From sequence record KX397373.1: DNA of 64,000 nucleotides. One strand, written 5' to 3'. The position numbers and the translations under genes were made by a program. The notes under the pieces were generated by a model. The model was not told where the DNA came from and searched no databases. It saw only the letters and a program-made list of their open reading frames with translations. Shown here piece by piece: positions 3,057 to 26,989 of this stretch. Every line of letters starts with the position of its first letter. Position 1 is the first letter of the stretch.

Positions 3057-4046
3057 ATGGCATTTATATTGCGCTGGACGAACCCAAACGCAATGAGCAC
3101 GGTGATTAATATTTACCGTGACACCAAAGACATCCTCACCAGTGCCTTGCCTGCACCAATCGCCACACTAAGTAACGGCGAGACCGAGTGGCGGGATACT
3201 ACCGCACTGGGTGGAAAAACCTACTACTACCTGATGACCGTTACCGCTAACGGGAAAACCGTCGCAGGCCCTTCGACACCATACACCATTGCGGTGAAAC
3301 GCGGTATCGGGCCAAACACCTTTATCCACGGCGATGACAAACTGGGCTTTATGGGCGTGGTGCCGTACGAAGAACGTTTCGATGTGAACCAACTCCCCGC
3401 AGCATTCCTGGCCATGTTCCCAGCATCGTTCACTGACCGGCCGGTACTGCTCAAGTTCAGTTACTACGGCAAGATTCTGTACATTCCTGAGTTCAGCCCA
3501 GCCATTGGGTTTGCCAGCTGGGCTGCACTGTATAGCGCTGGGTTGATTTACGGTCGGGACGACAACGGGCCCGCGGGCGGATGGGGTACATTACCACCGA
3601 CGAAGCAGGATGCGAAGGTGATTCACAAAGGGGACACCTATCGAATGCGTGTCCCGCGGGGGTTAGTGGGTCAGAACGGCGAAGATGTCTTCCCGTTCAA
3701 TGACGCTTACCAGTTGAAAGACCATGATGCCACTGACCTCGTTACGTACAACGAATTTAACGATTTGTACTACGCGATGGTAATGGACTGTCCGGTTAAA
3801 CAACGGGCTATCAATGCCGCCAACTTCTCCTATTCGTTCTTCGGCGCTGGTACAGTTAACTCAGCGAACCCACACTACAACGGTGGGGCGGTGTGTATGG
3901 AACACGACAGCGTGAACGATCGTGTTCTGCACCGTGGGAAGTTTGATGCCGCCGGTGGGGCTAACCTGAGCATGATGCAAAAAATCAACTATGTCACCCC
4001 ACAGCAAACGGGCCGTTATCTCCCGCTTTTTGAACTGGTAGAATAG
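3057..4046 (+). CDS. Module 1, type B virion protein (FN3/Ig-like N-terminus plus shared GPG..GY(F/Y)G domain)
   Basis: L.W.NPN...T.I.IYR...YYY motif, paralogous to 6409 and 9870. Confidence 0.75.
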   Translation: MAFILRWTNPNAMSTVINIYRDTKDILTSALPAPIATLSNGETEWRDTTALGGKTYYYLMTVTANGKTVAGPSTPYTIAVKRGIGPNTFIHGDDKLGFMGVVPYEERFDVNQLPAAFLAMFPASFTDRPVLLKFSYYGKILYIPEFSPAIGFASWAALYSAGLIYGRDDNGPAGGWGTLPPTKQDAKVIHKGDTYRMRVPRGLVGQNGEDVFPFNDAYQLKDHDATDLVTYNEFNDLYYAMVMDCPVKQRAINAANFSYSFFGAGTVNSANPHYNGGAVCMEHDSVNDRVLHRGKFDAAGGANLSMMQKINYVTPQQTGRYLPLFELVE

Positions 4047-4054
4047 GAGCAGTT

Positions 4055-4984
4055 ATGACCATTCGTTTAAGCTGGGTTTCACAGGCCAGCAAAAACCTGA
4101 CTGCTATCGAAATCTATCGTAAAGTCGGGTATGCCGCAACCATCGACGTGAACGCCCCTGGAACGCCGTATAAGACGCTCTCTCCAACAGCCACAGAGTT
4201 TATCGAGAATGTGACTGACCTCACGGAGAAAACCATCTACAGCTACTGGGTGGTGGGTGTGAAGGATACCGAGCGGTTGTTCGGTGGGCGTATTGTGCAG
4301 GGGTTCTTCCTGGACACCGGACCTGGCCCGCAAACCATTCTTCGCGGAGACTGGTACTGTGGTTACTTCGGGCCGGTAGCGGCCGCAGATTTCTTCACCA
4401 CGGCGGAGATTAAAGCGTTACTGACCACCACTCAAGCAGGTGTGGTCAGTAACGAACCGGGGACATGGTACAAGTTCATCTACCTCGGTAAAATCATCTT
4501 TGTTCCCGCAACCCAACACGGCCAGAACATCCTTGCCAACATCTACAACCGTGGGATGATGTTTGGTACGGATGACAACGGGAACTTCGTCCCGCCGGGG
4601 GCGTCGGCAACTAAACAAGATGTCCGCATCAGTAAAAACGGCCGTAGCTATCGGATTCGTTTACCGCGTGGGGATGCGTATGACGGGAAACTGGATCAGA
4701 TTAACGGGGAGTGGTTCTCGACCATGGGACGTATGTTCCTGACATCAATTGACACCTCGAAAAACGTGGATGCGAACGGTGTAGGGCGGGGGAAAATGGG
4801 TAGTCTGGCCGTATTGGGTAACAGTGGCAACCAGTACGATACCGGTGCACAGGCATTAACCCCGATGTATAGCGCAAGTACGATTTTCTTCGCGTATGGA
4901 TACCGTCCCGATACCTGGTCAACCACGTCCTCGCTCTCCTCAAACGTAGGTTACAGTTTCGTGTTTGAATTAATCCTCCCGTAA
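4055..4984 (+). CDS. Module 1, type C virion protein
   Basis: I.L.W..Q....L.AIEIYR motif, paralogous to 7435 and 10864. AGGAG RBS. Confidence 0.75.
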   Translation: MTIRLSWVSQASKNLTAIEIYRKVGYAATIDVNAPGTPYKTLSPTATEFIENVTDLTEKTIYSYWVVGVKDTERLFGGRIVQGFFLDTGPGPQTILRGDWYCGYFGPVAAADFFTTAEIKALLTTTQAGVVSNEPGTWYKFIYLGKIIFVPATQHGQNILANIYNRGMMFGTDDNGNFVPPGASATKQDVRISKNGRSYRIRLPRGDAYDGKLDQINGEWFSTMGRMFLTSIDTSKNVDANGVGRGKMGSLAVLGNSGNQYDTGAQALTPMYSASTIFFAYGYRPDTWSTTSSLSSNVGYSFVFELILP

Positions 4985-4996
4985 TGGAGAACCACC

Positions 4997-6397
4997 ATGG
5001 GGTTTTACAGTGATACGTCGTTGGAACTACTGTGCCAACAGATTCTCCGTGATAACCCCGGATTACCTTACCCGCTGACGAAAGACAATGTGCTTATCTT
5101 AAGCGGGCCTTTGACTTCCGGTGTCAGTGGAAGCGGCCGTAATAGCCGCATCACCCTCAACGGGAAAATGGGGTCAGGTTTTTCTGGGCGAAAGGAGTTC
5201 TTTTACGATCGTCTGAAAATGGAATCGATTTATACCAGCTTGCTTTCAACGCTGGTGTTGACGATGCCGAACGATGCCAAGACCAATGCCGACTTACTGC
5301 CGACCATCAACGATGCGTTAGGGCTGGGGTTAACTGCAACCGATTTGGCAGCGCCTACCACAGCGTTAGCGCTCGGACGGACACCCACCACAGCCAGCCT
5401 GGTTATTGCCAGTAACTGTCCGTGTTTTACCGGGACACTGACGGTGAAATGGCAACGTGGCAGCGCTGCACTGTACCCAGACTCAGGGCCAGGCAGTAAA
5501 ATGATGCTGATGGGCGACATGAACGAAGGTTACTTCGGGATGGTGACGCAGCAGGAACTGGCACGCGGCTCCGACGTCTACAGCGCCTTCGCCGAGGGGA
5601 AATCCCTGAAAGCGGCAGTGGGGATAGACACCGCGGATATGTTCTGGTTGAAGTTTGCGTTAGACGGCAAGATTTGTTATTTCCCGTCCCGCAATATCGC
5701 AGCGAGTCTGGTCTGGAATGACCTGGCAGATAATGGCGCAGCGCGTGGCGATGCCAAATACCCGACGACCTTTGTTGCCGGGGACGGCACTACCGTGTTT
5801 GCCCAGTTCCGCCTGCCCAACATCAGCACCACCGAAGTGGTTAACCCGTCTCGTGGGGATGCGACCTCTGACCCGGTACGATTGTTTAATAAGGTACACA
5901 AACAAACCTACGGGACGGGTGTGTGGGATGAGCTCACCACCATTAACATGGCGGAAGTGTTCTGGTGGTTAAACCGCTATACGGCTTCCAGCGGTAACTC
6001 AGCGGTTATCAGTCAGTTTAACCTGGCATCTGTTAATCCCAATGCCATTGTGAACACCCACAACTGGCGGCCGTTTGTTATTTTGGTGGACGGTAACCTG
6101 TATATCGTGCCAGTACGGAACATCGAAGGGAAACTGGAGAAAAGCGTCAGGGGCTTTGATGTCCTTGTCTCCTCGACCGTTGACCCGAACATGCTGCGGG
6201 CCATGGAAAATGTTGAGGGCAGTATTGTTCTTAGCAGCCCAACACCACTCGTGTACGCGCCGAGTTATAATGTCTTTAAAGCCGTGCAAGATGTCCGTGG
6301 TGGTACTCCACTGCGTTCTATCGGGTTCGACTTTACTGCAACGTACGAAACCAAGTTTAACCTGTCCGCTGCCAATGGTGAGCTGACCGGTTTCTAA
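4997..6397 (+). CDS. Module 2, type A virion/fibre protein
   Basis: MGFY..SLELLCQQI.RDNP; KEFFYDRL; ends NGELTGF. Confidence 0.75.
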   Translation: MGFYSDTSLELLCQQILRDNPGLPYPLTKDNVLILSGPLTSGVSGSGRNSRITLNGKMGSGFSGRKEFFYDRLKMESIYTSLLSTLVLTMPNDAKTNADLLPTINDALGLGLTATDLAAPTTALALGRTPTTASLVIASNCPCFTGTLTVKWQRGSAALYPDSGPGSKMMLMGDMNEGYFGMVTQQELARGSDVYSAFAEGKSLKAAVGIDTADMFWLKFALDGKICYFPSRNIAASLVWNDLADNGAARGDAKYPTTFVAGDGTTVFAQFRLPNISTTEVVNPSRGDATSDPVRLFNKVHKQTYGTGVWDELTTINMAEVFWWLNRYTASSGNSAVISQFNLASVNPNAIVNTHNWRPFVILVDGNLYIVPVRNIEGKLEKSVRGFDVLVSSTVDPNMLRAMENVEGSIVLSSPTPLVYAPSYNVFKAVQDVRGGTPLRSIGFDFTATYETKFNLSAANGELTGF

Positions 6398-6408
6398 AGG
6401 ATGCGATC

Positions 6409-7425
6409 ATGTCATTAAAGCTTACATGGGCTAACCCGAATACGGCAGCCACAGCGATTCGTATCTACCGCAAAGATACGACCTTCGATTCTTCTTCATT
6501 ACCCGCGCCGTTGGCAGAAATTGGGCCACTGGAGACCACCTACACCGACACCACAGCAGTAGAAGGCAACACCTACTACTACATCATCGGTACGGTGAAC
6601 GCTATCGACGAAGTGTTCACACCCACGCAAAAAATCACCGTCAGTGATAACCGTGGCGTGGGGCCGGGGGTATTACTCGGTGGTAACGGTGTGTTGGGGT
6701 ACTTTGGTACAGTGGCTCCGGAAGACTTTATCAACAGTTCTTCTATTCTGGCACAGGCCGCATCAGTTACGGGTATCCCAAGCACCTTGATTTCACCCAC
6801 CTGGCACAAGTTCATTCGTAACGGGAAAATCCTTTACGTCCCCGATACCTTCTTCGGTACTAGCGACTGGCGTTATCTGTACCAGGCGGGGTTTGTGTAC
6901 GGGGTTGATGGGAATGGGCCACCGGGGTTCGTCAGCACCGGTGTAACATTAACTAACCAGTTGCGGGTTGTTGTGTTTAAAGGCCAACGTTACAAAATTC
7001 GCCTGTTACGCGGGTGGAGTGACGGCCCTGAAACCGACATCATCAATTTCAATGGGGCGGTATCGAACCACGATAATCTGGCCAATACCCCCGATAACGA
7101 ATACAACGATTTGGTGTACGCACTCTGCAAGTTCACCCCGTACAAACAACGGGTGCCGAACTTTGCCAATCTGGAGTGGGACAAACTTATCGGTCTCCCC
7201 ACCACGGACTGGAGCAGCAGTGGTAGCCAGGCTAACCAAATTAACACTTATCGTTTTGTTTGCCAGGAACGCTGGCCGAGCGGTAGCGTGTTAAACCGTG
7301 GGCAACGTGAAGTGACCTGGGGACAGAACGCCTCCCCGCACCGTCGCGATCATGTCAGTCAGATTGCGGCATCGATTGTCACCCAGTCGTTGTATTGGCT
7401 TCCAGTTCTGGAACTCATCGATTAA
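6409..7425 (+). CDS. Module 2, type B virion protein
   Basis: LKLTWANPN..IRIYR; paralog of 3057 and 9870. Confidence 0.75.
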   Translation: MSLKLTWANPNTAATAIRIYRKDTTFDSSSLPAPLAEIGPLETTYTDTTAVEGNTYYYIIGTVNAIDEVFTPTQKITVSDNRGVGPGVLLGGNGVLGYFGTVAPEDFINSSSILAQAASVTGIPSTLISPTWHKFIRNGKILYVPDTFFGTSDWRYLYQAGFVYGVDGNGPPGFVSTGVTLTNQLRVVVFKGQRYKIRLLRGWSDGPETDIINFNGAVSNHDNLANTPDNEYNDLVYALCKFTPYKQRVPNFANLEWDKLIGLPTTDWSSSGSQANQINTYRFVCQERWPSGSVLNRGQREVTWGQNASPHRRDHVSQIAASIVTQSLYWLPVLELID

Positions 7426-15139: not shown

Positions 15140-15189
15140 AAAGAAAGCGACCTACTACCCGTAAAGGTAGTAGGTCTGCTTATTTTATT
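15138..15189. terminator. Bidirectional terminator ending the minus-strand rSAM/fibre gene run
   Basis: GACCTACTACC / GGTAGTAGGTC stem with A-run to the left and T-run to the right. Confidence 0.85.
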
Positions 15190-15192
15190 CGC

Positions 15193-15861
15193 TTACAACA
15201 AGCCTTCTTCGGTCGCCACGGATTTGATACCCGTGAAGTCCTGTGCTTCGGCCAGTGTGCGAATCTTACGCTTGAGCTCCGTCATCGCTGCGTGCAGTTG
15301 CGCATCACGCTCAACAATAGCGGCCAGCACCGCTTTACACGCTGCAACGTCGAACGGGTGTTCTTCACTGCCTAAGCGGTTGTTCTGCGCATCCAGCCAA
15401 TACCCCGGCGAGGTATCGGATTGAACGTACGAGGCCAAGGACGCACGAGACTTCTCATCGGCTTGCAGCAGGATGCCCTGGAATTCGATGTTCTCGTGAC
15501 GCTGAGTTTCGTAGCGTTCCGCGATACGGGTATAGATAGGCTGAATCTCTTGGTAGAGATAGTTTACCGTCGAGGTCAAGCCTTTGCGGATTTCATCCAA
15601 CGGCAGCTCTAACACGGTTTCGATAAACTCTTTCGCCTTACGCAGCGTGAACTGGGCTTCCGGTTCACTGAGGTCGTACTCACGCAGCTTTTTGACGGCT
15701 GCTTTATCCGATACCCCGTTCAACAGATGATAATGCAGCAGGGTACAGTACCCCTGCTTGGTTTCATCGTCTTTCGCCAGAATGGTCATGTAATTACCGT
15801 GGCGGTCAATCGGGTTACCGAATTCGAAGTAACGGGCCTTTATCTCGTCATTACTAAGCAT
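15193..15861 (-). CDS. DUF4376-like tail-fibre assembly protein with a possible PqqD/RRE-like N-terminal domain
   Basis: C-terminal half FQG..LQADEKSR.SL...W.DA.N.......AI..R......H.....LK..I resembles DUF4376. AGGAG RBS. Confidence 0.65.
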   Translation of the reverse strand: MLSNDEIKARYFEFGNPIDRHGNYMTILAKDDETKQGYCTLLHYHLLNGVSDKAAVKKLREYDLSEPEAQFTLRKAKEFIETVLELPLDEIRKGLTSTVNYLYQEIQPIYTRIAERYETQRHENIEFQGILLQADEKSRASLASYVQSDTSPGYWLDAQNNRLGSEEHPFDVAACKAVLAAIVERDAQLHAAMTELKRKIRTLAEAQDFTGIKSVATEEGLL

Positions 15862-16430
15862 TCAGATTCTCCTGCTAACCCGAGGTCCATCAGCAGGCCG
15901 AAGTCAACCATCTGGAAGTGTTCGGATAATTCCTCACCCCAGATAAATTTCATCTTCTCTGCTAAGTCCCCGTTCTGTTCCTGGAAGATAAAGATTTGGT
16001 GCATTTCCTCACCAAACGAGTCGAACTGATGGTTAGAACGCAGCGCACGTACGCGCACACCGATCAAATCCGCAGCTTCCGGATTCTCCGGGTCGGCCCA
16101 GTTTAATGCCAGACCAATCAGGTTATCGGTATCCAGGTTCTGCGTAGAGCGACGCAGGATTTCGATTTTGTGGCGCGGGAATTCCGCAACACGCTGTTCG
16201 AAGCCCGGATTACGGATGGCCACCTGCTCCACAGAGTTGTGTGTTTTCTCAACCCCGTCCAGCGGCAGAATGACGTTCAGCCCGAAGCGCACACACAGAC
16301 GACGAATCTCATCAGTAAACGTGTCTGGTTCCACAATCGCGTGGATGTTGTACATGCCGTGCTTTTGCATAAACGCGGCAACAAGGTGAAGATTACGCTT
16401 CGTAAAATTGTGTATCAGCAACGACTTCAT
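15840..16430 (-). CDS. Hypothetical protein in the rSAM cluster
   Basis: 196 aa, AGGAG RBS, overlaps both neighbours. Confidence 0.7.
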   Translation of the reverse strand: MKSLLIHNFTKRNLHLVAAFMQKHGMYNIHAIVEPDTFTDEIRRLCVRFGLNVILPLDGVEKTHNSVEQVAIRNPGFEQRVAEFPRHKIEILRRSTQNLDTDNLIGLALNWADPENPEAADLIGVRVRALRSNHQFDSFGEEMHQIFIFQEQNGDLAEKMKFIWGEELSEHFQMVDFGLLMDLGLAGESECLVMTR

Positions 16431-17736
16431 TCGCTGGTGCTCCTAATTGGTTTTTCTTCTCGGCTGCTAATTTGCGATCGCGCACACAAGACACACAGTA
16501 GCACTGGGTCTTATCGTTCAGATCGGTATAACGGGTAGTACCGGTTTTCTGGTAGAAGTATTCTGCTACCAGCAGTTTGGCGGTAGTCCAGCCACACTGA
16601 CGACGCTCGGCGTGATACGCTTTGCGGTCTTCCATTTCCCCGTCACCGTTCTCGTATGACGCCGCGGCACAACTACCACACGCGTGCTTCATCGGGCAAC
16701 CCAGGCACGTTTCTGGGTAGTTGGTGTACTGCGTTTGAATTTCGTTCAACAGCTTATTGTCGTCGATATTGACAATCTCACGGCCACGCAGTTCTGCGAT
16801 AGCCTGACGTGTCGTTACCGTGGACATAAAGCGGTTACAGCCGTAAATCTTGCGGTCGAAGCCCAGGCAGGTCATGTGGGTTACGGTACCGCAGAACGGA
16901 CGCACACGCTCCGGGTTCAGACGCGTTGCTTCGTCGTCCAGGAGCTTCTGACGCCAATCCGGGTCCCAGGTTGCCATGAAGTCCAGGCCATCCGGGAAGA
17001 TGTGGGTCAGGCGGTTACGTGGGTCTTTCTCAAACCCTTTGTCGAACCAGTAGTCAATCACGTCCATCATCTGCAACGCAATCGACATTGCCATGGTGCG
17101 CGGCAGAATGTCTTCGTACGTGACGTTACCGGAAATGGTACCACCGCCAGTGACGTCCATCAGGTGCTTCATGGACTCGGCGTATTTCGGCAGGGTCTCA
17201 GACGTAAAGGTGGCTTTGATACCCAGTTCCAGGATACCGACCGATTTCAGGTAGTTGTAACCACGCATCGCTTTTTCGTACGACCCTTCACGGGTCGTGG
17301 TGAAGATACGATAGCGGTCGTGCACTTCCGGCAGACCATCGATAGACACACCGATGGACAGTTTGTCACGCCAGCGTTCGATAATCTCGCGGTTCAGCGG
17401 CTTGTCGAATAACGTGCCGTTCGTCGAGATGGAGAAGATAACATCACGGTTATCACGCTTCGCCAGTTCTTCGGCCGTTTCAAATACGGCTTTCAGAATC
17501 TTCGGCTGCATCATGGGTTCACCACCGATGATATCGATGATAACTTCCACGTTCTTCAAATGACGGTCACGGTCGAAACACGCATGAATGAAGTCCACTG
17601 CATCATCGGCTTTATTGTTACGCGGGTATTTACGCTCGTAGCAATATTCACAGTCGAGGTTACAGGAGAGGTTGGTCACCACCTGATAGGTTTTGGTGAT
17701 TTTGGGCTCTTGGGCCGGTGCTTTGGTATCACGCAT
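16393..17736 (-). CDS. Radical SAM/SPASM-domain peptide maturase
   Basis: CNLDCEYC (CX3CX2C); IIGGEP; SISTNGTL; SIDG. SPASM-like cysteines: CGTV..C..DRKIYGCNRF and CLGCPMKHACGSCAA...C. Confidence 0.92.
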   Translation of the reverse strand: MRDTKAPAQEPKITKTYQVVTNLSCNLDCEYCYERKYPRNNKADDAVDFIHACFDRDRHLKNVEVIIDIIGGEPMMQPKILKAVFETAEELAKRDNRDVIFSISTNGTLFDKPLNREIIERWRDKLSIGVSIDGLPEVHDRYRIFTTTREGSYEKAMRGYNYLKSVGILELGIKATFTSETLPKYAESMKHLMDVTGGGTISGNVTYEDILPRTMAMSIALQMMDVIDYWFDKGFEKDPRNRLTHIFPDGLDFMATWDPDWRQKLLDDEATRLNPERVRPFCGTVTHMTCLGFDRKIYGCNRFMSTVTTRQAIAELRGREIVNIDDNKLLNEIQTQYTNYPETCLGCPMKHACGSCAAASYENGDGEMEDRKAYHAERRQCGWTTAKLLVAEYFYQKTGTTRYTDLNDKTQCYCVSCVRDRKLAAEKKNQLGAPANEVVADTQFYEA

Positions 17737-18634
17737 TGCGATTTAACCCCGCTTGTATTACACGATTCATGTACTGGTAAGCGTCATAGCCAATGACTTC
17801 GGCCAGACGGTTACAGCCCGAGTTCAACACATCAATGGCATTGTCAGACTGGTCAAACGTGGCATCGGATTTTACCCACACCAGATTGCTACAGTCGTCA
17901 CAGTGCTGCTTGAAGAACTTGTTGATGCTGAGCGTTTGGTGGAACCCGTTCAGCGTGTTCAGCTCGGTCAACTGGTCGTGCATTTTGTTGTACCCGTACA
18001 TAAAGTTCATGACGAGATCCTGGTTAAGCGGCTTAGGCATGAAGTTATCAAACATCACACGGTAACCGTTTAAGCGGTAATGGTACAACGACTCGTGGAG
18101 TTTCAACAGGTCGTAGAACCAGTGCTTCGGTGCTAACTGGGCACGGGTAATCACCGACCATAACGTGATGTTGTCCAGCGCGTCAAACACCTCGAAAGCA
18201 TCGTAGCGACGCTCCTCAGCGATACGCAGCAACGGACGTTCGGATTCTGCATAGCCGTCAAAGGAGACGAAGATGCGATCCATTTGCTCGAGCACCGGCA
18301 GCTGGGCCGGGGTCAGTCGCAGACCGTTGGTGTACATTTCATGCTGTAGGTGCGGATAACGTTCCTTCAACTCAGCCATAAAGTCCTGGATTTTATTGAA
18401 CGCCAACAGGGGTTCACCGCCCGTCCAGTTAATTTGCTGAATAGTAGGATGCGCTTCCAGCGTTTCAAACAGCTTCTCTCTTTGGATGTCGCGCGCACTG
18501 TCCTTGACATCCATATACCCAACACCGCCACAGAAGCTACAATCGAGATTGCACTTCGAGGTGGTGACAATCGACAGCTCCATCGGAGTTGACGAAGGGT
18601 CGCGACGAATAGCCGACACAGCTTCTTCACTCAT
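17729..18634 (-). CDS. Second, shorter radical SAM protein
   Basis: CNLDCSFC; WTGGEPLL; YTNG; VSFDG. Only CDDC..C at the C-terminus. GGAG RBS. Confidence 0.88.
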   Translation of the reverse strand: MSEEAVSAIRRDPSSTPMELSIVTTSKCNLDCSFCGGVGYMDVKDSARDIQREKLFETLEAHPTIQQINWTGGEPLLAFNKIQDFMAELKERYPHLQHEMYTNGLRLTPAQLPVLEQMDRIFVSFDGYAESERPLLRIAEERRYDAFEVFDALDNITLWSVITRAQLAPKHWFYDLLKLHESLYHYRLNGYRVMFDNFMPKPLNQDLVMNFMYGYNKMHDQLTELNTLNGFHQTLSINKFFKQHCDDCSNLVWVKSDATFDQSDNAIDVLNSGCNRLAEVIGYDAYQYMNRVIQAGLNRNA

Positions 18635-18650: not shown

Positions 18651-19538
18651 TTATTCGAAAGTCAGCTTGAACAGCGGGTCATCTTTGATGTCCACACCCG
18701 TCTTTAACACGAACGGGTCGTTATAAGCATCAAGGATCTGGTTCAGAATAGCCTGACGGTCATTCACACGCCGTAAGTCATCTAACGTGACCGTGCGAGC
18801 ATGGAAGGCAGACACTGCGGTTTTCTCTTCAGCCGTCAGTTCTACTTTCGTCAGCAGGAACGCTACCAGTTTGTTCAGGTCTGCTTCGGTTGCAGGTGCT
18901 TCACCGAACTGCGTCTGCACCAGGTACTGCATCCACGGTTTGCGGATACGCTTGGTGATGTCGTGTTCGTCAAAGATTGCTTCGAATTGTTTCTCAGCCG
19001 GGTTCCAGACAAACTTGTAGCTGTAGGCCAGCAGGTCAAGCATGTTGGTAATGCCGTGCTTTTCAAAGCCAACGATAGGGTAATACTCTTCGACACCGGT
19101 ATACTGCTCAGTGTCTTGCGTTACCTGCGTAAACCAGCCAGGCATAGACCCCATGTAGTCCCAGCTCCATTCACGGCGGGCCATCGGTTTCAGGCCACTT
19201 TCGGTAAACGGAATCAGGAACATTTCCAGGTCAACCACCTGGTTCAATACCGCATCGCTCAGGAAGTATTTCCCATCCACTAAGCGACCTTTCACATCTT
19301 GCTCACCGGCCGTGATGTGAATGTGCTGCACGCTACGACCCGCTAACGTATAATCGGCTTCCACCGTATAGTTCTTCGGGTTAGCCAGCTCACGTCCACG
19401 AACCTTTGGCCACTCCCCTGGCAACTGACTGATCAGTCGCACCTGGTCTAACAGGTGGAATTTCACACTGTCGTACAGGCTGATATGCAGTGGGAAGTTT
19501 TGCGTTGTCTTAAACGCAAGGTGTAGATCGTTCTTCAT
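18651..19538 (-). CDS. Hypothetical protein between the precursors and the rSAM genes
   Basis: 295 aa, AGGGG RBS, short gaps to neighbours. Confidence 0.75.
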   Translation of the reverse strand: MKNDLHLAFKTTQNFPLHISLYDSVKFHLLDQVRLISQLPGEWPKVRGRELANPKNYTVEADYTLAGRSVQHIHITAGEQDVKGRLVDGKYFLSDAVLNQVVDLEMFLIPFTESGLKPMARREWSWDYMGSMPGWFTQVTQDTEQYTGVEEYYPIVGFEKHGITNMLDLLAYSYKFVWNPAEKQFEAIFDEHDITKRIRKPWMQYLVQTQFGEAPATEADLNKLVAFLLTKVELTAEEKTAVSAFHARTVTLDDLRRVNDRQAILNQILDAYNDPFVLKTGVDIKDDPLFKLTFE

Positions 19539-19548
19539 TTAAGTCCCC

Positions 19549-19755
19549 TTATCGGTTCCCCGCTCCGTGACTACAACCACCGCTACATGTCCAGCTACAA
19601 GACCCGCCGCAGTTATAGTGCGATAACGGTAACCCAGCAAGGTTGTTAGTCGTACTAACCGTCCCCTGGGTTGCGATGAACGAGTTAGCGTCCGCCGTCT
19701 TGATATAGCCTTCCACTTGCACCATTTTGTCACGGATGTTTTTGAGTGAAATCAC
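19549..19755 (-). CDS. Short Cys-rich precursor-like peptide P3 (4 Cys)
   Basis: GTG start after GGGGG RBS. ISLKNIRDKM leader and HYNCGGSCSWTCSGGC core are homologous to P1 and P2. Confidence 0.8.
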   Translation of the reverse strand: MISLKNIRDKMVQVEGYIKTADANSFIATQGTVSTTNNLAGLPLSHYNCGGSCSWTCSGGCSHGAGNR

Positions 19756-19799
19756 ACTAACCCCCAAATTTGTAAAAAGTTAACTGGGAGACGAGGGCG

Positions 19800-20198
19800 T
19801 TACCGCGTTGGCCCGGAACAACCGGAACAACCAGAGCAGCTTGAGGAACATGAAGAAGAACAACCTGTTGAACACGTTCCTGAACAGCCGTTTGCACAGC
19901 CTCCTGAACATGCACCCGAACAGCCCGTACAGGTCGAAGAACAACCCGAAGTACAGCTGGACGAACAACTTGCCCCACACGTTCCCGACGCAGAACCTGA
20001 GCACCCGCCGGAACACGACGAACATGTCCAGCTACAGGTACCGCCACAATCATAATGCGCACGCGGCTGGCCGCCAAACAACGTCGAGTTGTTCGTGGCT
20101 TTATTGCGAATATAGGTCTGCACCCCTGCCGCGTTTTTCAATGCGGTATTATCAATACTATTCAGACGGTTCTGAATATCTTTTAGGTTGATAGCCAT
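19800..20198 (-). CDS. CX2-3-repeat precursor-like peptide P2 (132 aa, 20 Cys)
   Basis: AGGAG RBS, ATG 20198. MAINLKDIQNRL leader; HYDCGGTCSWTC then a Ser/Gly/Thr-Cys repeat. Confidence 0.88.
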   Translation of the reverse strand: MAINLKDIQNRLNSIDNTALKNAAGVQTYIRNKATNNSTLFGGQPRAHYDCGGTCSWTCSSCSGGCSGSASGTCGASCSSSCTSGCSSTCTGCSGACSGGCANGCSGTCSTGCSSSCSSSCSGCSGCSGPTR

Positions 20199-20209
20199 GA
20201 TGTCTCCTA

Positions 20210-20593
20210 CTACGGCCCAGAGCAGCCAGAACAGCCCGTACAGCTCGATGAGCACGACCCCGAGCACCCGCTACATTTACCGGAGCACCCGCCGGAGCAA
20301 CTGCCTGAACAACCTGAGCAACCCGAACACCCGGTAGAACAACCACCCGTACAGCTGCCGGTACACGTCGACGTACACGTTCCCGAACAACTGGTACAAC
20401 TTGCCGAACACCCGTTAGAGCACGACCAGCTACACGTACCACCACAATCTAATTGACCCGGTGTCCAACCCGCAAAGCGCTCTTGCGCGTTATACGCTTG
20501 CGAGGCAACTTGCGCATCAACGCGAGGTCCGGTGGCGACATTGGCTTCCACTATTTGCAGGCGGTCGCGTATGTTTTTAAGTGAGATTGCCAT
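20210..20593 (-). CDS. CX2-3-repeat precursor-like peptide P1 (127 aa, 21 Cys)
   Basis: AAGGA RBS. MAISLKNIRDRL leader; DCGGTCSWSC then a Ser/Gly/Thr-Cys repeat. Confidence 0.88.
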   Translation of the reverse strand: MAISLKNIRDRLQIVEANVATGPRVDAQVASQAYNAQERFAGWTPGQLDCGGTCSWSCSNGCSASCTSCSGTCTSTCTGSCTGGCSTGCSGCSGCSGSCSGGCSGKCSGCSGSCSSSCTGCSGCSGP

Positions 20594-20659: not shown

Positions 20660-21859
20660 TTAGCGTGTACCAGCTTCTGCTTGTACGTCGTCGCGAGTCG
20701 TGAGACTGTTGTTGACGTGAACCGCAGCTTGCACCACACCACCGTACGTCTTGTGGAGGTAGTTCGGGTGTGGGTTGTCCGCTGCAACGTGGTTCGCCAG
20801 GTTCTGGTTTGCCTGCGAGATAGCGTTGGTATTGTTCGTGATGCGGGTGTTCTGCGCGGTAATCTGGGCTTGCAGGTTATCAATCTTCTGTTGGAAGTCT
20901 TGACCTTGCGATTCCAAATCACCGACACGCTGCGTTAACGCGTTCAGGGCAGACTGCAAATCATTGACAGCTTTCTGCAACTGCAACACCAGGGAGTTGA
21001 GGTTCGCCAAGGCGAGCGACATCTTCTGGTAGTTCTGCGCCACGGTGTTCAGCTGGTCATTCCATGCCACCAGAGATTGCACCACTGCATCGATACGGGC
21101 TCCCAGTGCAGTATCGGCGGTTTTCAGTGAAGCAATTTCTTTTAAGGTGTCATCAATCTGCGTTTGAACCGCGGCAATCAGTGCACGAATCTCGGTTTCT
21201 GTCAGACCGTTGATCTGGTGAATATTGAGACTGTGGACGTTGCCTTGTGCATTAACGTGCGCATTCAACGCATCAAGGAAGTCTTGTTTCAGACCGTCGA
21301 TGATACCTTTGATTTGTTCGAGCTGTACCGCCGACCCGGAGTTAATCGCGTCTTTGATGCCCGACAGTACCGTGATGATAAACTCGAACCCGTAGATGTC
21401 ACCCACGTCTTTAAACGTAGGTGCTGACGGGAACGTATCCGGAACGTTACGCAAGTCTTTGAAATCAACCGTGCGGTCTTCCAGTTTCAGCTCTGCAATC
21501 GCCTGAGTAATGGCAACAACGTTTGCTGACTGTGGACCACCGATGACCTGAGCCGAGATAGTGATGTCGGTTGGAATAGCAGAGTTGGTGACCACCACCC
21601 CCATCAGGATTTCTTGGTTCTTGGTAAGCTTCTCGTACGCCGGGTGAGCGAAGATCAGCTCATAGTCCGTCCCACGTTTATAGAAGGTACCGGGTTTGTT
21701 CGTTGCAGCCAGACGAAACGACTCCGCGTAAAACGGCCCGTCTGGGAATGCAAAGGCCCGGTTAACCTTACCGGAACCTAACGTAACGCGTCGTGTGACT
21801 GCGTTCGACGTCAGTGTCCCCTTTAGGTCAAACGGGTACTGATATACAATAGCGGCCAT
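20660..21859 (-). CDS. Tail fibre/baseplate-associated protein with a long C-terminal coiled coil
   Basis: AAGGAG RBS, ATG 21859. YPFD..G N-terminus, GPFY, G.DY.L, DLRNVPDTFP, heptad region, H....NPH motif. Confidence 0.75.
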   Translation of the reverse strand: MAAIVYQYPFDLKGTLTSNAVTRRVTLGSGKVNRAFAFPDGPFYAESFRLAATNKPGTFYKRGTDYELIFAHPAYEKLTKNQEILMGVVVTNSAIPTDITISAQVIGGPQSANVVAITQAIAELKLEDRTVDFKDLRNVPDTFPSAPTFKDVGDIYGFEFIITVLSGIKDAINSGSAVQLEQIKGIIDGLKQDFLDALNAHVNAQGNVHSLNIHQINGLTETEIRALIAAVQTQIDDTLKEIASLKTADTALGARIDAVVQSLVAWNDQLNTVAQNYQKMSLALANLNSLVLQLQKAVNDLQSALNALTQRVGDLESQGQDFQQKIDNLQAQITAQNTRITNNTNAISQANQNLANHVAADNPHPNYLHKTYGGVVQAAVHVNNSLTTRDDVQAEAGTR

Positions 21860-21902
21860 AGCCAAACTCCTTTGATTGGGGCGTCCGTGCCCCACAGCGC
21901 TG

Positions 21903-24900
21903 TTAAGACTTGAACATAAGATTGACCTGAATCTCGTCCAAGTCAACCAGCGAGTTACCTCCAGCGTATTCACAGGCCACTGTCAGAGTCAGCGTTCCGG
22001 AATTGTAACTGGCAACAAACGGAGGGTTCAGCGCATCTTTCCCGGTGTTCAGTACCACCGCCGGTTCAGAAGGCAGATTCGGGATGACCAGCTCACGCGC
22101 TACCCGCACCACACCAAAGCTCGATGTCAAATCGCTCAATGCATACAGCATGAACGGGGTATCAACATCGGTCTGTCGGAAGACGGTGCCGGTACTGTCG
22201 TCCACCACCTGTATCGCCAACATCTTCGTCTTCAGTGTTTGATACTGAGCCGCGGTCAGTTGCGCAGACAAAGTGGCCACAAACTCCACCCCAGCCGGAA
22301 GTCCTGAGCCGGTGACATTCACGAGGTCAGGACCCGTTGCAAACGGTATCTCCGCAGCGGACGGATTCACCCCGGACGTCAGGCAATACCAGAACATCGG
22401 GATACCGTTCGGTACCGCGTAACGCAGGCTAATCTGGCGAGCCGGATCACCAATATTCCCCGGCACCGTAAAACGCAACCTGGCCACCGCCATGTAGGTT
22501 TCCCCGGCGACGTGCGGCACAGACTCAGCACCGATCCACTTCATGTTAAAACTGGCCGCGCGGGCATTGTCTGCCGTTACGGCGGCCGTCTCAACCGGAG
22601 GTTTCAACCAGAAGCGCTCAGAGACATTCACCAGGTCTTGCCACCGCGTGGCACCAAACCCGCTATAGCGTTTCTGGATAGGGAGCGCAGGACGAGTTTG
22701 TCGTGTAATCCCTTTGGACAGCTCTTGTCCATCGGCATACCCGGCAGTGCCCGAGCCCGGTGTCGCTAACGGCACTTTGCTCAGTTGCGCCATTGACCCG
22801 ATACGGGCTTCACGGGCAGCGGACACATCGTGACGGTTAGCGACCGCAGCGTGCTCTACCAACTGCTTGACGTTACCGAAACGTTTCACCTTATCAAACG
22901 TCGACAGGGTAATGCGTTCGCTGTCCGTCACAACCGTACCGATATACAGCTGGGTATCGCTGTCCGGTTCCTGTTGCTCCAGCAGGCGGTATTGCGGAAC
23001 CCCGTTGACCAGCGCAGCGTGCATGTAGAACGTGCGGTTCTGGTAGTTAGTTGGGTACAAGTCACGGATATCGGAACTGTATTCGCCCAACGTGTAGTAC
23101 GCTGAACCGAATCGCAGCAACTCCTGTTCCGTGATGTACAGCGCCCAACCTTCCGCAGTCTTCGTCCCGGCGAGGATGTTATCCTCAGGTGTCCCGGTAC
23201 GGAAATTGCGGACGGTGTTCTTGTAGACACTGGCGGCAAAGTACAACCCATTAAACAACCATTTGGTCATCCCGATATAACCGGTCTCTGGCATCACCAC
23301 AATGTCGACTTCATTCGAAGACGGGTTCATGGAAATGAGCGAGTTCGTCCAGCCCCCGAAAGTCGTATCACACGACAACAGGAAAGAACGCCAGCGACTG
23401 TCTCCAACCACCCCCATTCGGTACAACGCCCCCAGGAACAACACATAGCCGTCGTCACGCTGAATCAACTTCGAGTTGGTGTACTGGTCGTGTGCCAAAG
23501 AGATACCGGCATCCGGGTCGCGGTAGTTCTCGACCACCGGTGACAACATCGTGGTACCCAACTGCACGTTCCCGTTGGTCACCGACATCGGCAGTTTCCA
23601 CACCCAGGTAAAGGTGTGGGTTACCAGCCGACTGGTGTTGTCCCACATGCGCACAGACGCCATGGCGAATGCCGCATTTAACCCACCGACATCGAACACT
23701 TGCAGCTTGGTTAATGTTTGCACGACCAACTCGTCGTTCCACACCGGCACCGCTGCTGCAATCGCCGCATTCAATGCTGCCCAGGTCGCATCCGATACCG
23801 TGATACGATCTGCGGTAAAGGTGGACGTCCCGGTCACGGTCTTGTACGGGAAAGACCCTGCCTCGGTAATAACACGACCGTTGATGTACAGTTGGCCATC
23901 TTTCCAGATATTCGGCGAAGACAGCAAGGTTCGGTAGTCAGGGTCGGTCACCGCGATACGCGCATTGTCTGGCCCCCAGCCCGGATAGTCCGGGAAGTAG
24001 CGAGACGATTGGGTATAACGGAGCTGGATAACCTCTGCGGCCACATTGAGGTGTCGCATCAATACCGTGTTGGCAGTCCCACCGAGGTGGATAAGGCCAC
24101 GCATGTATTGCTGGTACACCGACCCTACTGCACCACCCACGGTGGCGTTTGCGGTTTCGATAAGCGTTGTGCTGCTACCGAGTAAATCGTACAAACTCGT
24201 GTTCGGTGCTGGACTGATACCGATACGTGGCGGGTTGTTTGAATAAACGTCACAGAAGGAGTTCATCAACAACCCTGAGGACAGGAAGACCCTGTTCGTC
24301 AGCGCCACACCTTTGTTACGGTTGGTCACCGAGGGCAGAGGCTGGGCATTTGGGAACTCAATCTTGTTCTCGGTTAATGCGATCGGGAAGATTTTGTTCT
24401 CAAGCGTCAATAACCAGTTCTCCGTGTTAAGGGAGAGTGATACCGACCAGGCATCTGTCCACTGTGCCGAGGTATTATCGGAGAAGTACCCGTGCATCTC
24501 TGCACGCAACCGCACCATGTTCACCTGTGAGGCTGAATAAAACGAAGGGAGGTAGTTAACCGCATTCCCGTTCGGCCAACGGGCTTTCCCCTCCGCGGTA
24601 CGGTAGGCCAGGAACTTGGTTGTGGCATCGTCGCCATAACCGCCTTCTTGTACAATCAGCGCCACGTCGCCGTCTTTGTCTGGGTAATTGAAATTAATTA
24701 CCGGGATAGTCGAACTGTTTTTACTGCGCAGTTCGCTCAGACTGATACTCCAACCGCCAACAGTAAAGCGGGTGTTGTTGACAATAGACATCAACACAAC
24801 CACACGACCTTTGGTCACCGTCACTGTCGAATACTGACGATAATCTTTAAAGGCGAGGGTACTGCCGTTCGACCGGACACAGTCGGGCAGAGTGATCTGG

Positions 24901-26933
24901 TACACGTCGTTGTGGGTCGCGTAGTTCATCGTCCCGTTGAACAACACCAGATAGAACAACCCGTCGCTCGCCTCAAAGATACCGGCATCAGAATCCCCCA
25001 CCACTACACGCGTCAATACCACACCAGGGAATTTACTCATCCCAGCTGGATGGTACGGGAACGTCGTGGGGTAGTTCTTCAGGAAATTATTAGACCCCCC
25101 GATAGACGCATACCAGTAATAGACCCGGCGGGTGTCTTCTGGCCCATCGCTGCCGTTACGCAGCACATAGACGTTACCGCCTTCGTAACGGGCAACCGCC
25201 CAGTTATTGGAACGATCGTAACCAAAGCCCGCGTAGTTACTGACGGTAGGAATAGGCAGGAAACTCGGGTTACCGTATTCCGCGCCCCCGACTGTCCAGG
25301 ATGGCAGTAAAGTGTTCACCTTCTCATTCAGCGACTTGATAGACTGGTCGATAGCGTACCCCTGTTTCGAGGTCACCATCTTATCATCGGTCGAGTCAAT
25401 CGCATCCCACAGTTTCACCAGACCACTGACAGACGTTGACCCGTACGGGACGTTGTCCAAATCAGCGAGGGTATGCGTGTGGTCTGTTTTTGCCTTACTC
25501 GCCAATGCCGCAGTTAGTGCTTTAGTAACCGGCTTCTCTAACGGGGCAGTGTTGTCCATTTTGTCGATACCGAAATCGGTTTTCGTCAAGGTCAACACTT
25601 GTTTCCCATCAGACCCTTTCACAAACTTCTTGCCGTTGATGCTGTAAGTGTCATCAACGTACAAGTCCAGTTTGTTTTTCAGGTCATTCACCGCCTTCTG
25701 CGAAATAGCAGCACCGGTGGCTACTGAGTTCGAGATATTGGTGATAGAGAACAGACCCGCTACCGCCGTCGTTGCGGTAGGCAGTTCCACGTTCATGTAC
25801 ACCCGGTTGGTGTCTTTCCCGCTACCGTAAATCTTGAGTGTGTCGCTCGATTTAAAGTAGGCGTTCGCCGGTAACAGTTTCACCGAGGTCAGATACATCC
25901 CGACCATCTCCGGCGTCACCAGATACACAGAGTTAAACACCGGGGCCAAGACATCGGCTGCTGCACCGGAGTGTACCCAGAGGGTATTCAGACCCGCAGA
26001 GAACTCTACCCCGATACCAGGGTCGTTGTTGTCCTGGTCAGCTTTCAAGACCAGCGGTTTCGGCGAGGTAATAATGAACTTCTCGCCCTTCATGCTGATC
26101 AGGTGACCTGCGGTGGTCTGGAAAGTAATCGCGTCGTTGTTCAGAACACGCAGACGTCCCAGTAAATCCCCCAGGGTGTTGTCCATCAACAGGTCAACGT
26201 GCGCCTGTGAGATGCCCGAGGTGGACATCAACGTCACCAGCTCTGCCAAGGTACGGCCGAAGGCTTTCGTCGCGTCTACGGCCTTCCCAACGACCGGGAG
26301 CGCCCCTACGTCAGCGGTGGTGTAACCGTGGGCATTACTTTTCAGGTGGTGCTGGTACATCTCCTGCTCGAACACGGTGTTACCGTTCTGGTAAATCATG
26401 TCGGTCAGTTCAGTAAAGGCACCGTCCAGCTCACTGGCACGCTCGAGGATACCCAGACGAATATCTTCCAGCGCTTTCACCACTTCATCACGCAGAATCG
26501 CCTCATCCAGATTCTCTGGTGGGTCGATAGGTGAGATAACCGGGGCATACTTCATTAACTCTGACCAATCCACGTTACGCGGATCAGGCAAGTCGGTTTT
26601 CACCAGGTACTTACCAATCTCTGACTGAGGCAGGCGATATTGACGCCCCACGGCCAGGAACTCGTAATCCACTTCGGAGGCAGTCAGTAGGATGAAGCCC
26701 CCGTAGATTTGGTCTTGCTCAGCTTCGGCCAGCTCTTTGAAATAGTAACCGAGATAGTAATCCAGACCCTCAATCAGGGTGCGTTTACCGCCGGGTGCTA
26801 TTGCATCCTTAACGGTGAGTTTCAGACCAATGCGGTAGAAAGGCCCTTCGGCAGGAATCACCGCATTGTATTTGTTCGGGTACGTTGCGGTCTTAAGCGT
26901 ACCGTTAAACTGCGCCGCATCTTCTCTCGGCAT
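21903..26933 (-). CDS. Large tail fibre protein (about 1676 aa)
   Basis: AGGAG RBS, ATG 26933. Fibre-repeat motifs ATTAVAGL, STSVSGLVKL, HTHTLADL, GIDKMDNT..LEKPV. Confidence 0.8.
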   Translation of the reverse strand: MPREDAAQFNGTLKTATYPNKYNAVIPAEGPFYRIGLKLTVKDAIAPGGKRTLIEGLDYYLGYYFKELAEAEQDQIYGGFILLTASEVDYEFLAVGRQYRLPQSEIGKYLVKTDLPDPRNVDWSELMKYAPVISPIDPPENLDEAILRDEVVKALEDIRLGILERASELDGAFTELTDMIYQNGNTVFEQEMYQHHLKSNAHGYTTADVGALPVVGKAVDATKAFGRTLAELVTLMSTSGISQAHVDLLMDNTLGDLLGRLRVLNNDAITFQTTAGHLISMKGEKFIITSPKPLVLKADQDNNDPGIGVEFSAGLNTLWVHSGAAADVLAPVFNSVYLVTPEMVGMYLTSVKLLPANAYFKSSDTLKIYGSGKDTNRVYMNVELPTATTAVAGLFSITNISNSVATGAAISQKAVNDLKNKLDLYVDDTYSINGKKFVKGSDGKQVLTLTKTDFGIDKMDNTAPLEKPVTKALTAALASKAKTDHTHTLADLDNVPYGSTSVSGLVKLWDAIDSTDDKMVTSKQGYAIDQSIKSLNEKVNTLLPSWTVGGAEYGNPSFLPIPTVSNYAGFGYDRSNNWAVARYEGGNVYVLRNGSDGPEDTRRVYYWYASIGGSNNFLKNYPTTFPYHPAGMSKFPGVVLTRVVVGDSDAGIFEASDGLFYLVLFNGTMNYATHNDVYQITLPDCVRSNGSTLAFKDYRQYSTVTVTKGRVVVLMSIVNNTRFTVGGWSISLSELRSKNSSTIPVINFNYPDKDGDVALIVQEGGYGDDATTKFLAYRTAEGKARWPNGNAVNYLPSFYSASQVNMVRLRAEMHGYFSDNTSAQWTDAWSVSLSLNTENWLLTLENKIFPIALTENKIEFPNAQPLPSVTNRNKGVALTNRVFLSSGLLMNSFCDVYSNNPPRIGISPAPNTSLYDLLGSSTTLIETANATVGGAVGSVYQQYMRGLIHLGGTANTVLMRHLNVAAEVIQLRYTQSSRYFPDYPGWGPDNARIAVTDPDYRTLLSSPNIWKDGQLYINGRVITEAGSFPYKTVTGTSTFTADRITVSDATWAALNAAIAAAVPVWNDELVVQTLTKLQVFDVGGLNAAFAMASVRMWDNTSRLVTHTFTWVWKLPMSVTNGNVQLGTTMLSPVVENYRDPDAGISLAHDQYTNSKLIQRDDGYVLFLGALYRMGVVGDSRWRSFLLSCDTTFGGWTNSLISMNPSSNEVDIVVMPETGYIGMTKWLFNGLYFAASVYKNTVRNFRTGTPEDNILAGTKTAEGWALYITEQELLRFGSAYYTLGEYSSDIRDLYPTNYQNRTFYMHAALVNGVPQYRLLEQQEPDSDTQLYIGTVVTDSERITLSTFDKVKRFGNVKQLVEHAAVANRHDVSAAREARIGSMAQLSKVPLATPGSGTAGYADGQELSKGITRQTRPALPIQKRYSGFGATRWQDLVNVSERFWLKPPVETAAVTADNARAASFNMKWIGAESVPHVAGETYMAVARLRFTVPGNIGDPARQISLRYAVPNGIPMFWYCLTSGVNPSAAEIPFATGPDLVNVTGSGLPAGVEFVATLSAQLTAAQYQTLKTKMLAIQVVDDSTGTVFRQTDVDTPFMLYALSDLTSSFGVVRVARELVIPNLPSEPAVVLNTGKDALNPPFVASYNSGTLTLTVACEYAGGNSLVDLDEIQVNLMFKS

Positions 26934-26952
26934 TGCAAAGACTCCTACTTTG

Positions 26953-26989
26953 AAATAAAACGGATACCCCACCCCGGAGGGTGGGGTTA
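26953..26989 (-). terminator. Terminator-like hairpin between fibre genes
   Basis: ACCCCACCC / GGGTGGGGT stem with a T-rich tail on the minus strand. Confidence 0.6.

Follow-up and report, generated by a model that had tools for sequence, protein, structure and literature searches.

Positions 16393 to 18634 of the window (the whole stretch of 64,000 nt of KX397373.1 analysed here, from the Erwinia jumbo phage Stratton) encode two remotely paralogous radical SAM enzymes, gp180 (rSAM-A, here A) and gp181 (rSAM-B, here B), and sequence comparisons indicate that these, together with the adjoining gp182, almost certainly form one unit that modifies the Cys-repeat tails of small proteins of the tail-fibre region. 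The account that we favour, and consider reasonably probable as a whole, is that the pair lies in the tail-fibre operon of a jumbo phage and jointly modifies the tails of gp185, gp184 and gp183, with A as the core cross-linker, B carrying out a second step and gp182 replacing the RRE. The features of the region are as follows.

15149..15176, no strand assigned: hairpin immediately past gp178, formed by a 12-bp palindrome and with T-runs on either strand
15193..15861, minus strand: gp178, 222 aa, with a DUF4376 domain (PF14301, 3.2e-9); final gene of the operon
15840..16430, minus strand: gp179, 196 aa, phrog_7988; shares 38 nt with the 3' end of A
16393..17736, minus strand: A, Stratton gp180, 447 aa; radical SAM/SPASM enzyme of CteB-like type, no RRE
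17729..18634, minus strand: B, Stratton gp181, 301 aa; distantly paralogous to A, its C-terminal domain SPASM/twitch-like but reduced
18651..19538, minus strand: gp182, 295 aa, zero Cys; conserved accessory protein, phrog_8030, fold without a match
19549..19767, minus strand: gp183, short Cys-repeat protein with a truncated 5-Cys tail and the junction CGGSCSWTC
19800..20198, minus strand: gp184, Cys-repeat protein, 132 aa from the conserved MAINLK start, 20 Cys
20210..20593, minus strand: gp185, Cys-repeat protein, 127 aa, 21 Cys, with the junction CGGTCSWSC
20660..26972, minus strand: gp186 (virion structural protein) and gp187 (1689 aa), immediately upstream on the same strand

The operon begins with the three Cys-repeat genes (gp185 to gp183) and continues through gp182, B, A, gp179 and gp178, the last five being tightly packed and ending at the hairpin, which is likely the operon terminator. 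Upstream, gp187 is a homologue of SPN3US gp168, a tail protein (PMC5105663). The 447-aa and 301-aa ORFs that an earlier note on this DNA had described as overlapping are both present, and they share 8 nt, ATGCGTGA. On the minus strand, which reads ...AAT GCG TGA here, the ATG start of A is at 17736-17734 and the TGA stop of B at 17731-17729. Conservation of gp179 is confined to the jumbo-phage clade. The start of gp184 is annotated in the record at 20267.

Both enzymes score above the Pfam gathering score of 29.5 for Radical_SAM (PF04055), A with 54.9 bits and B with 52.6 bits. In A, the CX3CX2C motif (Cys 25/29/32) is followed by eight SPASM-like cysteines (282, 290, 300, 344, 347, 353, 356 and 381) and by a CYCVSC sequence (412/414/417). 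An alignment of 29 homologues shows C25/29/32, C282, G283, C300, C344, C347, C353 and C356 to be invariant and C381 nearly so (≥90% conserved), while neither CX3CX2C nor the SAM-binding GGE varies anywhere in the family. The auxiliary cysteines and the additional CYCVSC reported earlier are both present, and after the barrel A carries the seven-Cys SPASM motif (C...G....C, CX2CX5CX2-3C, then C); the Pfam model PF13186 gave no match to A at E ≤0.1. The C-terminus has a clade-specific CxCxxC (412-417) and a terminal QFYEA motif. Against the PDB, the profile of A aligned with CteB (5wgg) across barrel and SPASM domain, from CteB residue 97, with an E-value of 4.8e-38, compared with 6e-14 for anSME. 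The best NCBIfam matches are PapB (NF047865, 1e-38) and TIGR04115 (6.8e-35), and A stays far short of the curated cut-off for any named maturase family.

The cysteines of B are far fewer, and agree with the earlier description of CDDC..C only: residues 28/32/35, then just 245/248 (CDDC) and 274, so that four of the seven SPASM cysteines are missing. This triad is invariant in an alignment of 22 homologues, even in the distant ones of locus L005. The conservation across homologues of the SPASM cysteines of A and the triad of B argues that these features are not due to chance. Every member of the B family, including those fused to A, has invariant CX3CX2C and GGE motifs, which argues for retained SAM cleavage. 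The model of B (pLDDT 82.8) aligned with CteB at a VIA Z of 20.1 (rmsd 3.0, 266 aligned residues) and can be superposed on the SPASM region of CteB as far as residue 446. The Z scores for other enzymes were 18.6 for ChlB and TigE, 18.3 for anSME, 14.7 for SkfB and 12.8 for EpeE, and the barrel matches viperin and MoaA at about 15, clearly beneath the SPASM peptide maturases. One SPFM2 record annotates B as MoaA.

A and B were previously called dissimilar, which holds for their identity (23%) but not for their descent, as they are remote paralogues: hhalign gives 98% over the barrel, and both belong to phrog_1802 (PHROG 1802; 1.1e-125 for A, 3.6e-81 for B). The barrels alone align; profile-profile alignment of the two C-terminal domains gave no match, so the triad of B is not assignable to particular SPASM cysteines.

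The CX3CX2C motif begins at residue 25 in A and 28 in B, which leaves no space for an N-terminal RRE and bears out what had been noted from the sequence, and the CteB alignments of both enzymes start past the RRE of CteB (residue 91-97). A PqqD-like RRE in the enzyme or a partner, the mark of an RRE-dependent RiPP maturase, was found in none of A, B and gp182. The suggestion that recognition is supplied in trans survives in part. A gp182-like third protein is always present, and gp182 is a reasonable candidate for a trans recognition or substrate-presenting factor, but it is not an RRE: Foldseek and VIA searches with its model (pLDDT 89.6) revealed no RRE/PqqD fold, nor any Foldseek match at E ≤1e-3, and the maximum VIA Z against the PDB was 4.2. 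It has no match in Pfam and NCBIfam, and in the protein atlas it matched viral hypothetical clusters only. Homologues of gp182 lie directly upstream of B/A at loci L005, L006, L008, L010, L012 and L032-L039. The picture of a leader peptide, on the other hand, is not supported, as in other phages it is fibre-like proteins that carry the Cys tail, at their C-terminus, and the substrate is for that reason probably a structural protein, not an exported peptide.

The A+B pair occurs in 62-64 jumbo-phage records and is conserved in all SPN3US-like jumbo phages, with synteny kept in SPN3US (where the cassette is gp161-gp168), CR5 and Kwan. B and A are also found together in unrelated smaller phages, and a scan of IMG/VR produced 337 relatives. 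At every one of the phage loci examined (84/84) the A-type gene adjoins a (CX2-3)n Cys-repeat ORF. A tree of A domains is split with 100/100 support into an A-only clade and a clade that has gp182 and B, so that B and the gp182-like protein are confined to one well-supported clade and B was gained once; one nested subclade has since lost B altogether. Within the gp182+B clade, B-A fusions with the same domain order as the gene order arose at least twice (P0261, P0322 and P0325, at L008, L010 and L039), each preceded by genes for a fibre-like protein with a Cys tail and for a gp182-like protein, and the fused B domains have lost their auxiliary cysteines. At locus L005, two B-type genes and A follow the gene for a fibre protein whose sequence finishes with CSGCSWTC and Cys repeats. 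Order and adjacency vary, with B after A at L036 and gp182 between B and A at L038, so fusion is not universal. Natural fusions are nevertheless classical evidence for physical or functional coupling and, taken with the conservation of the pair and its co-occurrence in smaller phages, they support joint action of A and B as one functional unit; from the same comparisons, the two are probably physically associated.

The Cys repeats contain hardly anything but Cys, Ser, Gly and Thr; Asp or Glu acceptors are absent, and Pfam gave no match to gp183-185. A conserved junction motif, CxxxC(S/T)W(S/T)C, marks the start of the tail in some clusters. All six A-clusters with this motif contain B, and it is found in none of the ten A-clusters that lack B (0/10); the sole B-less subclade within the B clade is also without it. 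The association (Fisher p = 0.003) is descriptive only, as it is not corrected for shared ancestry and, with a single gain of B in the tree, the test is not phylogenetically independent. B-like domains without a Trp junction occur at L010/L039 and L036, and fused B domains have no auxiliary cysteines, so that the link between junction and B is an imperfect one. As a working guess, B may act at this junction. A narrower idea, that the triad of B tracks the Trp junction, was rejected, as the triad occurs at L036 with no junction, and at L008 the junction accompanies a fused B domain from which the triad is missing.

How the two enzymes might share the work can be read in several ways. The earlier note had offered a division by ring size, in which one enzyme closes CX3 rings and the other CX2 rings in the same core, and there are indeed two enzymes and a mixture of spacings in the Stratton tails (14 CX3 and 6 CX2 in gp185). 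However, both spacings also occur in the tails of A-only phages (CX2/CX3 counts of 242/982 for the L053 cluster and 36/85 for that of L041), and Kwan retains B although one of its substrates has CX3 at 22/22 spacings, all of which makes the split very improbable. The note's other suggestion was crosslinking versus epimerisation, with B making D-residues in the tail in the manner of YydG/EpeE or PoyD while A cross-links. B is about the size of YydG, has a single auxiliary site and shows a weak N-terminal NCBIfam match to it (3e-6), but this spans the generic barrel only and reaches 26.9 bits, short of the 300 bits of TIGR04078, nor is EpeE the closest fold: the model of B lies nearer the SPASM thioether/oxidative maturases (Z 18-20) than EpeE (12.8). 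Epimerisation by B is accordingly distinctly unlikely. That B instead serves A mainly in a non-catalytic way, as scaffold, electron relay or chaperone, would fit its much faster evolution (identity between genera of 34-51%, versus 62-77% for A), the fused domains without auxiliary cysteines and the loss of B from one nested subclade, and yet the invariance of CX3CX2C and GGE, in fused copies too, speaks against it, and it is judged about as improbable as epimerisation.

Chemistry other than thioether formation would be either Cys oxidation (to formylglycine or a thioaldehyde, as with anSME) or the readying of a Cys rod for metal binding. Among the structural and sequence neighbours of both A and B, anSME ranks near the top, and repeats made up almost entirely of Cys, Ser, Gly and Thr offer no classical ranthipeptide acceptor. 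Set against this, the profile of A is closer to CteB than to anSME by many orders of magnitude (4.8e-38 vs 6e-14), its best NCBIfam matches are PapB and the CXXX-repeat maturases, and the anSME target motif C/S-x-P/A-x-R is missing from the tails; such chemistry is regarded as unlikely. It is also conceivable that A and B act on unrelated targets (nucleotides, DNA, tRNA or host factors) and that their Cys-repeat neighbourhood is incidental, given the resemblance of the barrel of B to viperin and MoaA (Z about 15) and the MoaA annotation. This is hard to reconcile with a Cys-repeat ORF adjoining A at all 84 loci, with the fusion of B to A in several phages and with the clearly higher scores of SPASM peptide maturases for the model of B, and we hold it to be extremely improbable.

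Joint modification of the tails thus remains the preferred reading. Gene anatomy, conservation, folds, co-occurrence and fusions were observed directly; they point to gp183-185 as the substrates and suggest a chemistry, a site for B and a role for gp182. In outline, gp181 and gp180 would be two active radical SAM enzymes, relatives of the CteB/anSME-type peptide-modifying SPASM enzymes, and as what is most likely a physical pair they would act on the (CX2-3)n tails of gp185, gp184 and gp183. A would be the core enzyme and the ancestral one, present with every such Cys-repeat tail in phages, and, by analogy with CteB and PapB, probably installs thioether-type, Cys-derived cross-links along the repeats by means of two auxiliary Fe-S clusters, which in the SPASM subgroup are 4Fe-4S clusters. 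As Asp acceptors like those in PapB substrates are missing from the repeats, thioether chemistry is proposed by analogy alone. B and the gp182-like protein would be an add-on acquired once, in one clade. B appears to keep its SAM-cleaving site and usually a three-Cys auxiliary site, in which one iron would be free, possibly for a substrate thiol, and it would perform a second, different step, for which the CxxxC(S/T)W(S/T)C junction is the guessed site; gp182 would stand in for the missing RRE as a substrate-handling partner. More specific, and only tentatively put forward, is a dedicated phage radical machine of three proteins (the SPASM enzyme, its reduced and in places fused paralogue, and the substitute for the RRE) that covalently cross-links a Cys-repeat rod at the tip of a tail-fibre component, B making a distinct cross-link at the invariant Cys-Ser-Trp-Thr-Cys junction.

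Bacterial peptide natural products are the known setting of radical SAM/SPASM maturases, and here the same type of enzyme is hard-wired into the gene clusters that many phages have for their tail fibres. Enzymatic cross-linking of the tails, if it does take place, would amount to a post-translational modification of virions of a new kind, with a bearing on fibre stability and host recognition, and if the three-protein machine is real, RiPP chemistry would be acting on a structural protein of the virion, and a protein of new fold would take the place of the RRE. The pair is also a natural experiment on multi-enzyme radical SAM systems, with the two domains found separate, duplicated, fused or reduced to one, in a system that has a partner of unmatched fold instead of an RRE. 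SPN3US has an amber-mutant genetic system and, as it carries the cassette, the question is directly testable. Literature searches on radical SAM enzymes in SPN3US/phiEaH2, CXXX-repeat systems, TIGR04115 and phage tail fibres turned up only annotations of these genes, and in the SPN3US supplement gp163 and gp164 appear only as common to phiEaH2 and CR5. A search of sequencing runs gave none with >19% of the words, and no RNA run.

Several known systems share parts of this arrangement. The best solved relative of both A and B is CteB (5wgg/5why), the SCIFF thioether maturase of Clostridium thermocellum, which likewise has a Cys-rich substrate, but it possesses an N-terminal RRE and works alone on a small leader-core peptide; with the NCBIfam SCIFF model the score was 68 bits (cut-off 425). 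A does not belong to TIGR04115, the CXXX-repeat target maturases (121.2 bits, cut-off 350), or to the PapB family of freyrasin ranthipeptide maturases (NF047865; 133.4 bits, cut-off 340), although both models are, like A, without an N-terminal RRE, and the tandem CXXX-repeat substrate gene next to TIGR04115 enzymes has its counterpart in gp183-185 and at all 84 loci. PapB substrates have a CX3D acceptor that the phage tails lack, and the phage clade differs from both families in its additional B and gp182 and in its substrates, which are proteins of the fibre region or fused to fibres. B resembles SkfB and other twitch-domain maturases in that its barrel is followed by one reduced domain for an auxiliary cluster. 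Foldseek placed SkfB among the top matches of B (3.3e-10), but its VIA Z (14.7) is below those of the full SPASM enzymes; it has an RRE-like N-terminal part, and the auxiliary site of B has just three Cys. The HxsB/HxsC pair, for which we know of no established function, similarly combines a longer SPASM enzyme with a non-SPASM radical SAM enzyme of ~290 aa beside a short-repeat substrate. A matches HxsB (1e-24, 87 bits, cut-off 370) and B matches HxsC (1.9e-10, 40 bits, cut-off 268), in each case over the barrel only, and the Hxs substrate is an HXS repeat while that of the phages is a Cys repeat.

The window is 100% identical to Erwinia phage vB_EamM_Stratton, an Erskinevirus with a jumbo-phage genome of 244 kb and a relative of Salmonella phage SPN3US. 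Its two paired enzymes, rSAM-A (gp180; A) and rSAM-B (gp181; B), are both annotated in the record KX397373.1 as 'putative radical SAM superfamily protein'. The features are as follows, window coordinates being record coordinates minus 124000.

16393-17736, (-), rSAM-A (gp180), ORF of 447 residues
17729-18634, (-), rSAM-B (gp181), ORF of 301 residues
15149-15176, hairpin, a perfect 12-bp palindrome with T-runs on both strands, between convergent gp177 and gp178

At the B/A junction, AATGCGTGA, the TGA of B is overlapped by the ATG of A, with 8 nt shared. The pair belongs to a tightly packed, same-strand series in the order gp187, gp186, gp185, gp184, gp183, gp182, B, A, gp179 and gp178, followed by the 12-bp hairpin, likely a bidirectional terminator. 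The SPN3US homologue of gp187 (1689 aa) is gp168, a tail protein that resembles gp131, a component of the phiKZ baseplate periphery (PMC5105663). A virion structural protein is encoded by gp186, gp178 has a DUF4376 domain, and gp183, gp184 and gp185 are three small paralogous genes.

A passes the Pfam Radical_SAM threshold, and has cysteines at 25/29/32, 282/290/300/344/347/353/356/381 and 412/414/417. Across a 29-sequence alignment the CX3CX2C motif, the GG motif (G71, G72), C282, G283, C300, C344, C347, C353 and C356 are invariant, C381 is nearly so, and the third residue of the GG motif is E or D; the conserved Cys set reads as the seven-Cys SPASM signature. The profile of this alignment matched CteB (5wgg) across both barrel and SPASM domain (E 4.8e-38), beginning at CteB residue 97. 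CteB is a thioether synthase with its own N-terminal RRE, whereas A has none, and the match starts past that domain; the earlier note's statement that neither enzyme shows an obvious N-terminal RRE is confirmed, and its anatomy of the pair (ORFs, 8-nt overlap, Cys motifs, radical SAM assignment) was right in every detail. Among NCBIfam models, A came closest to PapB (1e-38) and to TIGR04115, the CXXX-repeat-target maturase (6.8e-35), each time scoring far under the curated cut-off; by score, A belongs to no curated maturase family. The C-terminal CxCxxC (residues 412-417) is conserved only in the jumbo-phage clade, as is the terminal peptide ...NE..(A/S)D.QFYEA (C-terminus, 16393-16520, (-)), and the A-types of smaller phages stop right after the SPASM domain. 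CxCxxC and the QFYEA peptide may serve to bind a metal or in docking.

B also passes the Pfam Radical_SAM threshold and matches no curated maturase family. Beyond 28/32/35 its only cysteines are 245/248 and 274; CX3CX2C, GGE and the triad C245/C248/C274 are invariant in a 22-sequence alignment that takes in two distant homologues from an unrelated phage contig. Its AlphaFold model (pLDDT 82.8) overlays CteB with Z 20.1 and rmsd 3.0 over 266 residues (model 15-301 on CteB 91-446), followed by ChlB and TigE (both Z 18.6) and anSME (18.3). Viperin and MoaA, at about 15, fall clearly below these, as does EpeE, an epimerase, at 12.8. B is therefore a CteB-type peptide-modifying enzyme, with a SPASM domain cut down to one three-Cys site. 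That A and B are unrelated enzymes was rejected, since they share 23% identity across the barrel, align by hhalign with 98% probability (barrel only; the C-terminal domains are not aligned) and both match phrog_1802; they are, by these comparisons, remote paralogues.

A tblastn search recovered B at full length from 62 phage records and A from 64, every one of them an SPN3US-like jumbo phage (Erskinevirus, Seoulvirus, Derbicusvirus, Wellingtonvirus, plus other Erwinia/Salmonella jumbo phages), and SPN3US (gp168 to gp161), CR5 and Kwan keep Stratton's gene order. Identities to these three are 77, 62 and 62% for A, 51, 39 and 34% for B, and 56, 42 and 43% for the accessory protein gp182 (295 aa), indicating that B evolves at about the rate of gp182 and much faster than A. 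In several Salmonella phage SPFM genomes A, B and gp182 are broken up or frameshifted (matches of 5-40% coverage); faulty sequencing or assembly, and not true gene decay, is the probable cause. Some IMG/VR jumbo-phage relatives (L021, 4530-5450; L029, 4531) have, in addition to the A-adjacent B, a second full-length B paralogue between two Cys-repeat genes.

In the putative substrates gp185 and gp184, a conserved N-terminal stretch of about 50 residues leads through a junction CGGTCSW(S/T)C into a run of 20-21 Cys with gaps of mostly three, sometimes two, residues. Neighbours of this type are what defines the CXXX-repeat maturase family. The annotated GTG start of gp184 at 20267 (155 aa; window 19800-20267, (-)) probably lies upstream of the true one: ATG 20198 opens the N-terminus MAINLKDIQNRL that the paralogues and SPN3US have in common, and gives 132 aa and no overlap with gp185.

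A-type genes extend beyond jumbo phages. An A-profile scan of IMG/VR gave 337 relatives, from which 78 loci were fetched; at every one of these, and at six others, the A-type gene adjoins a (CX2-3)n repeat ORF. One Logan contig (L005), whose phage has a tail tip of the GpJ type, encodes a 258-aa fibre-repeat protein with CSGCSWTC and Cys repeats at its end; behind it come, in turn, a gp182 homologue, a pair of B-type genes and one gene of A type (36% identity). A maximum-likelihood tree of the A domain shows two clades with 100/100 support. In one, A occurs alone, without gp182 or B; the other, which holds the jumbo phages, has gp182 in all loci but one, and B throughout save one nested subclade (L012, L032, L035).

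A B-profile HMM search of 1.84 billion representatives recovered many full-length B-type proteins and three natural fusions (P0261, P0322, P0325), in which a B-like radical SAM domain comes first and an A-type domain follows at the C-terminus (A-profile E 1e-113 to 1e-119). At two loci (L008, L010) genes for a Cys-repeat-tailed fibre-like protein and a gp182 homologue immediately precede the fusion gene; the P0261 contigs have an equal order as judged by length, with a 570-aa protein (faint CXXX-repeat Pfam match) and then a 221-aa protein in the gp182 position by length alone. In the A-domain tree the fusion at L008 is not sister to those at L010/L039, so fusion (or fission) occurred more than once. 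Distinct from these fusions are dozens of further matches of the B profile, 560-2280 aa long and carrying two to five radical SAM domains in tandem (P0193, P0196, P0197, P0223 and many others).

These data strongly support joint action of A and B on one substrate, and the repeated fusions and translational coupling make their physical association likely. The earlier note had offered, besides a heterodimer, a division of labour between CX3 and CX2 rings or between crosslinking and epimerisation. The ring-size split fails, as A-only systems carry both spacings in large numbers and one Kwan substrate is all CX3 with B still present; epimerisation by B is not favoured by the fold comparison (EpeE Z 12.8 vs CteB 20.1). 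For the leader recognition in trans that it proposed, gp182 is the natural candidate, accompanying B/A in every lineage but one of the B-containing clade. It has no Cys, and its family is a PHROG of unknown function and none besides. An RRE identity for gp182 was ruled out: its confident model (pLDDT 89.6) gave no fold match among solved structures.

A role for B may lie at the start of the Cys tail. The junction motif CxxxC(S/T)W(S/T)C occurs there in six A-clusters, every one with B, and in none of the ten clusters without B, an association that is not independent, as B was gained once in the A-domain tree. The sole B-less subclade within the B clade also lacks the motif, and this joint loss, with the confinement to B-containing clusters, suggests the junction as the site of action of B, with the Trp or a flanking Cys as a possible target. 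We hold this only tentatively, as the less probable reading: B-like domains without the motif occur (L036, L010/L039), and the auxiliary Cys are lost in fused B domains. In CteB, a cluster iron is reported to be free for a substrate thiol, and by analogy the three-Cys cluster of B could leave one free as well.

A literature search found no functional study of these genes, whose radical SAM annotation dates from the sequencing of SPN3US. The A/B/gp182 system would work like CXXX-repeat/ranthipeptide-type maturation, from which it differs by a second enzyme, RRE-less recognition and, in several phages, a target at the C-terminus of a fibre-like protein. The present analysis adds the B-A fusions, the clade structure, the fold of B, the finding that gp182 is no RRE, and the case against a split by ring size. 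On a Margulisbacteria MAG contig (L011), an open frame of 668 codons that includes a CX3 repeat of 47 Cys stands beside an A-like enzyme (3117-5120 and 5998-7200), without gp182 or B; its neighbours are cellular (purL/purF, lepA), and it looks like a cellular, or old prophage, form of the core pair.
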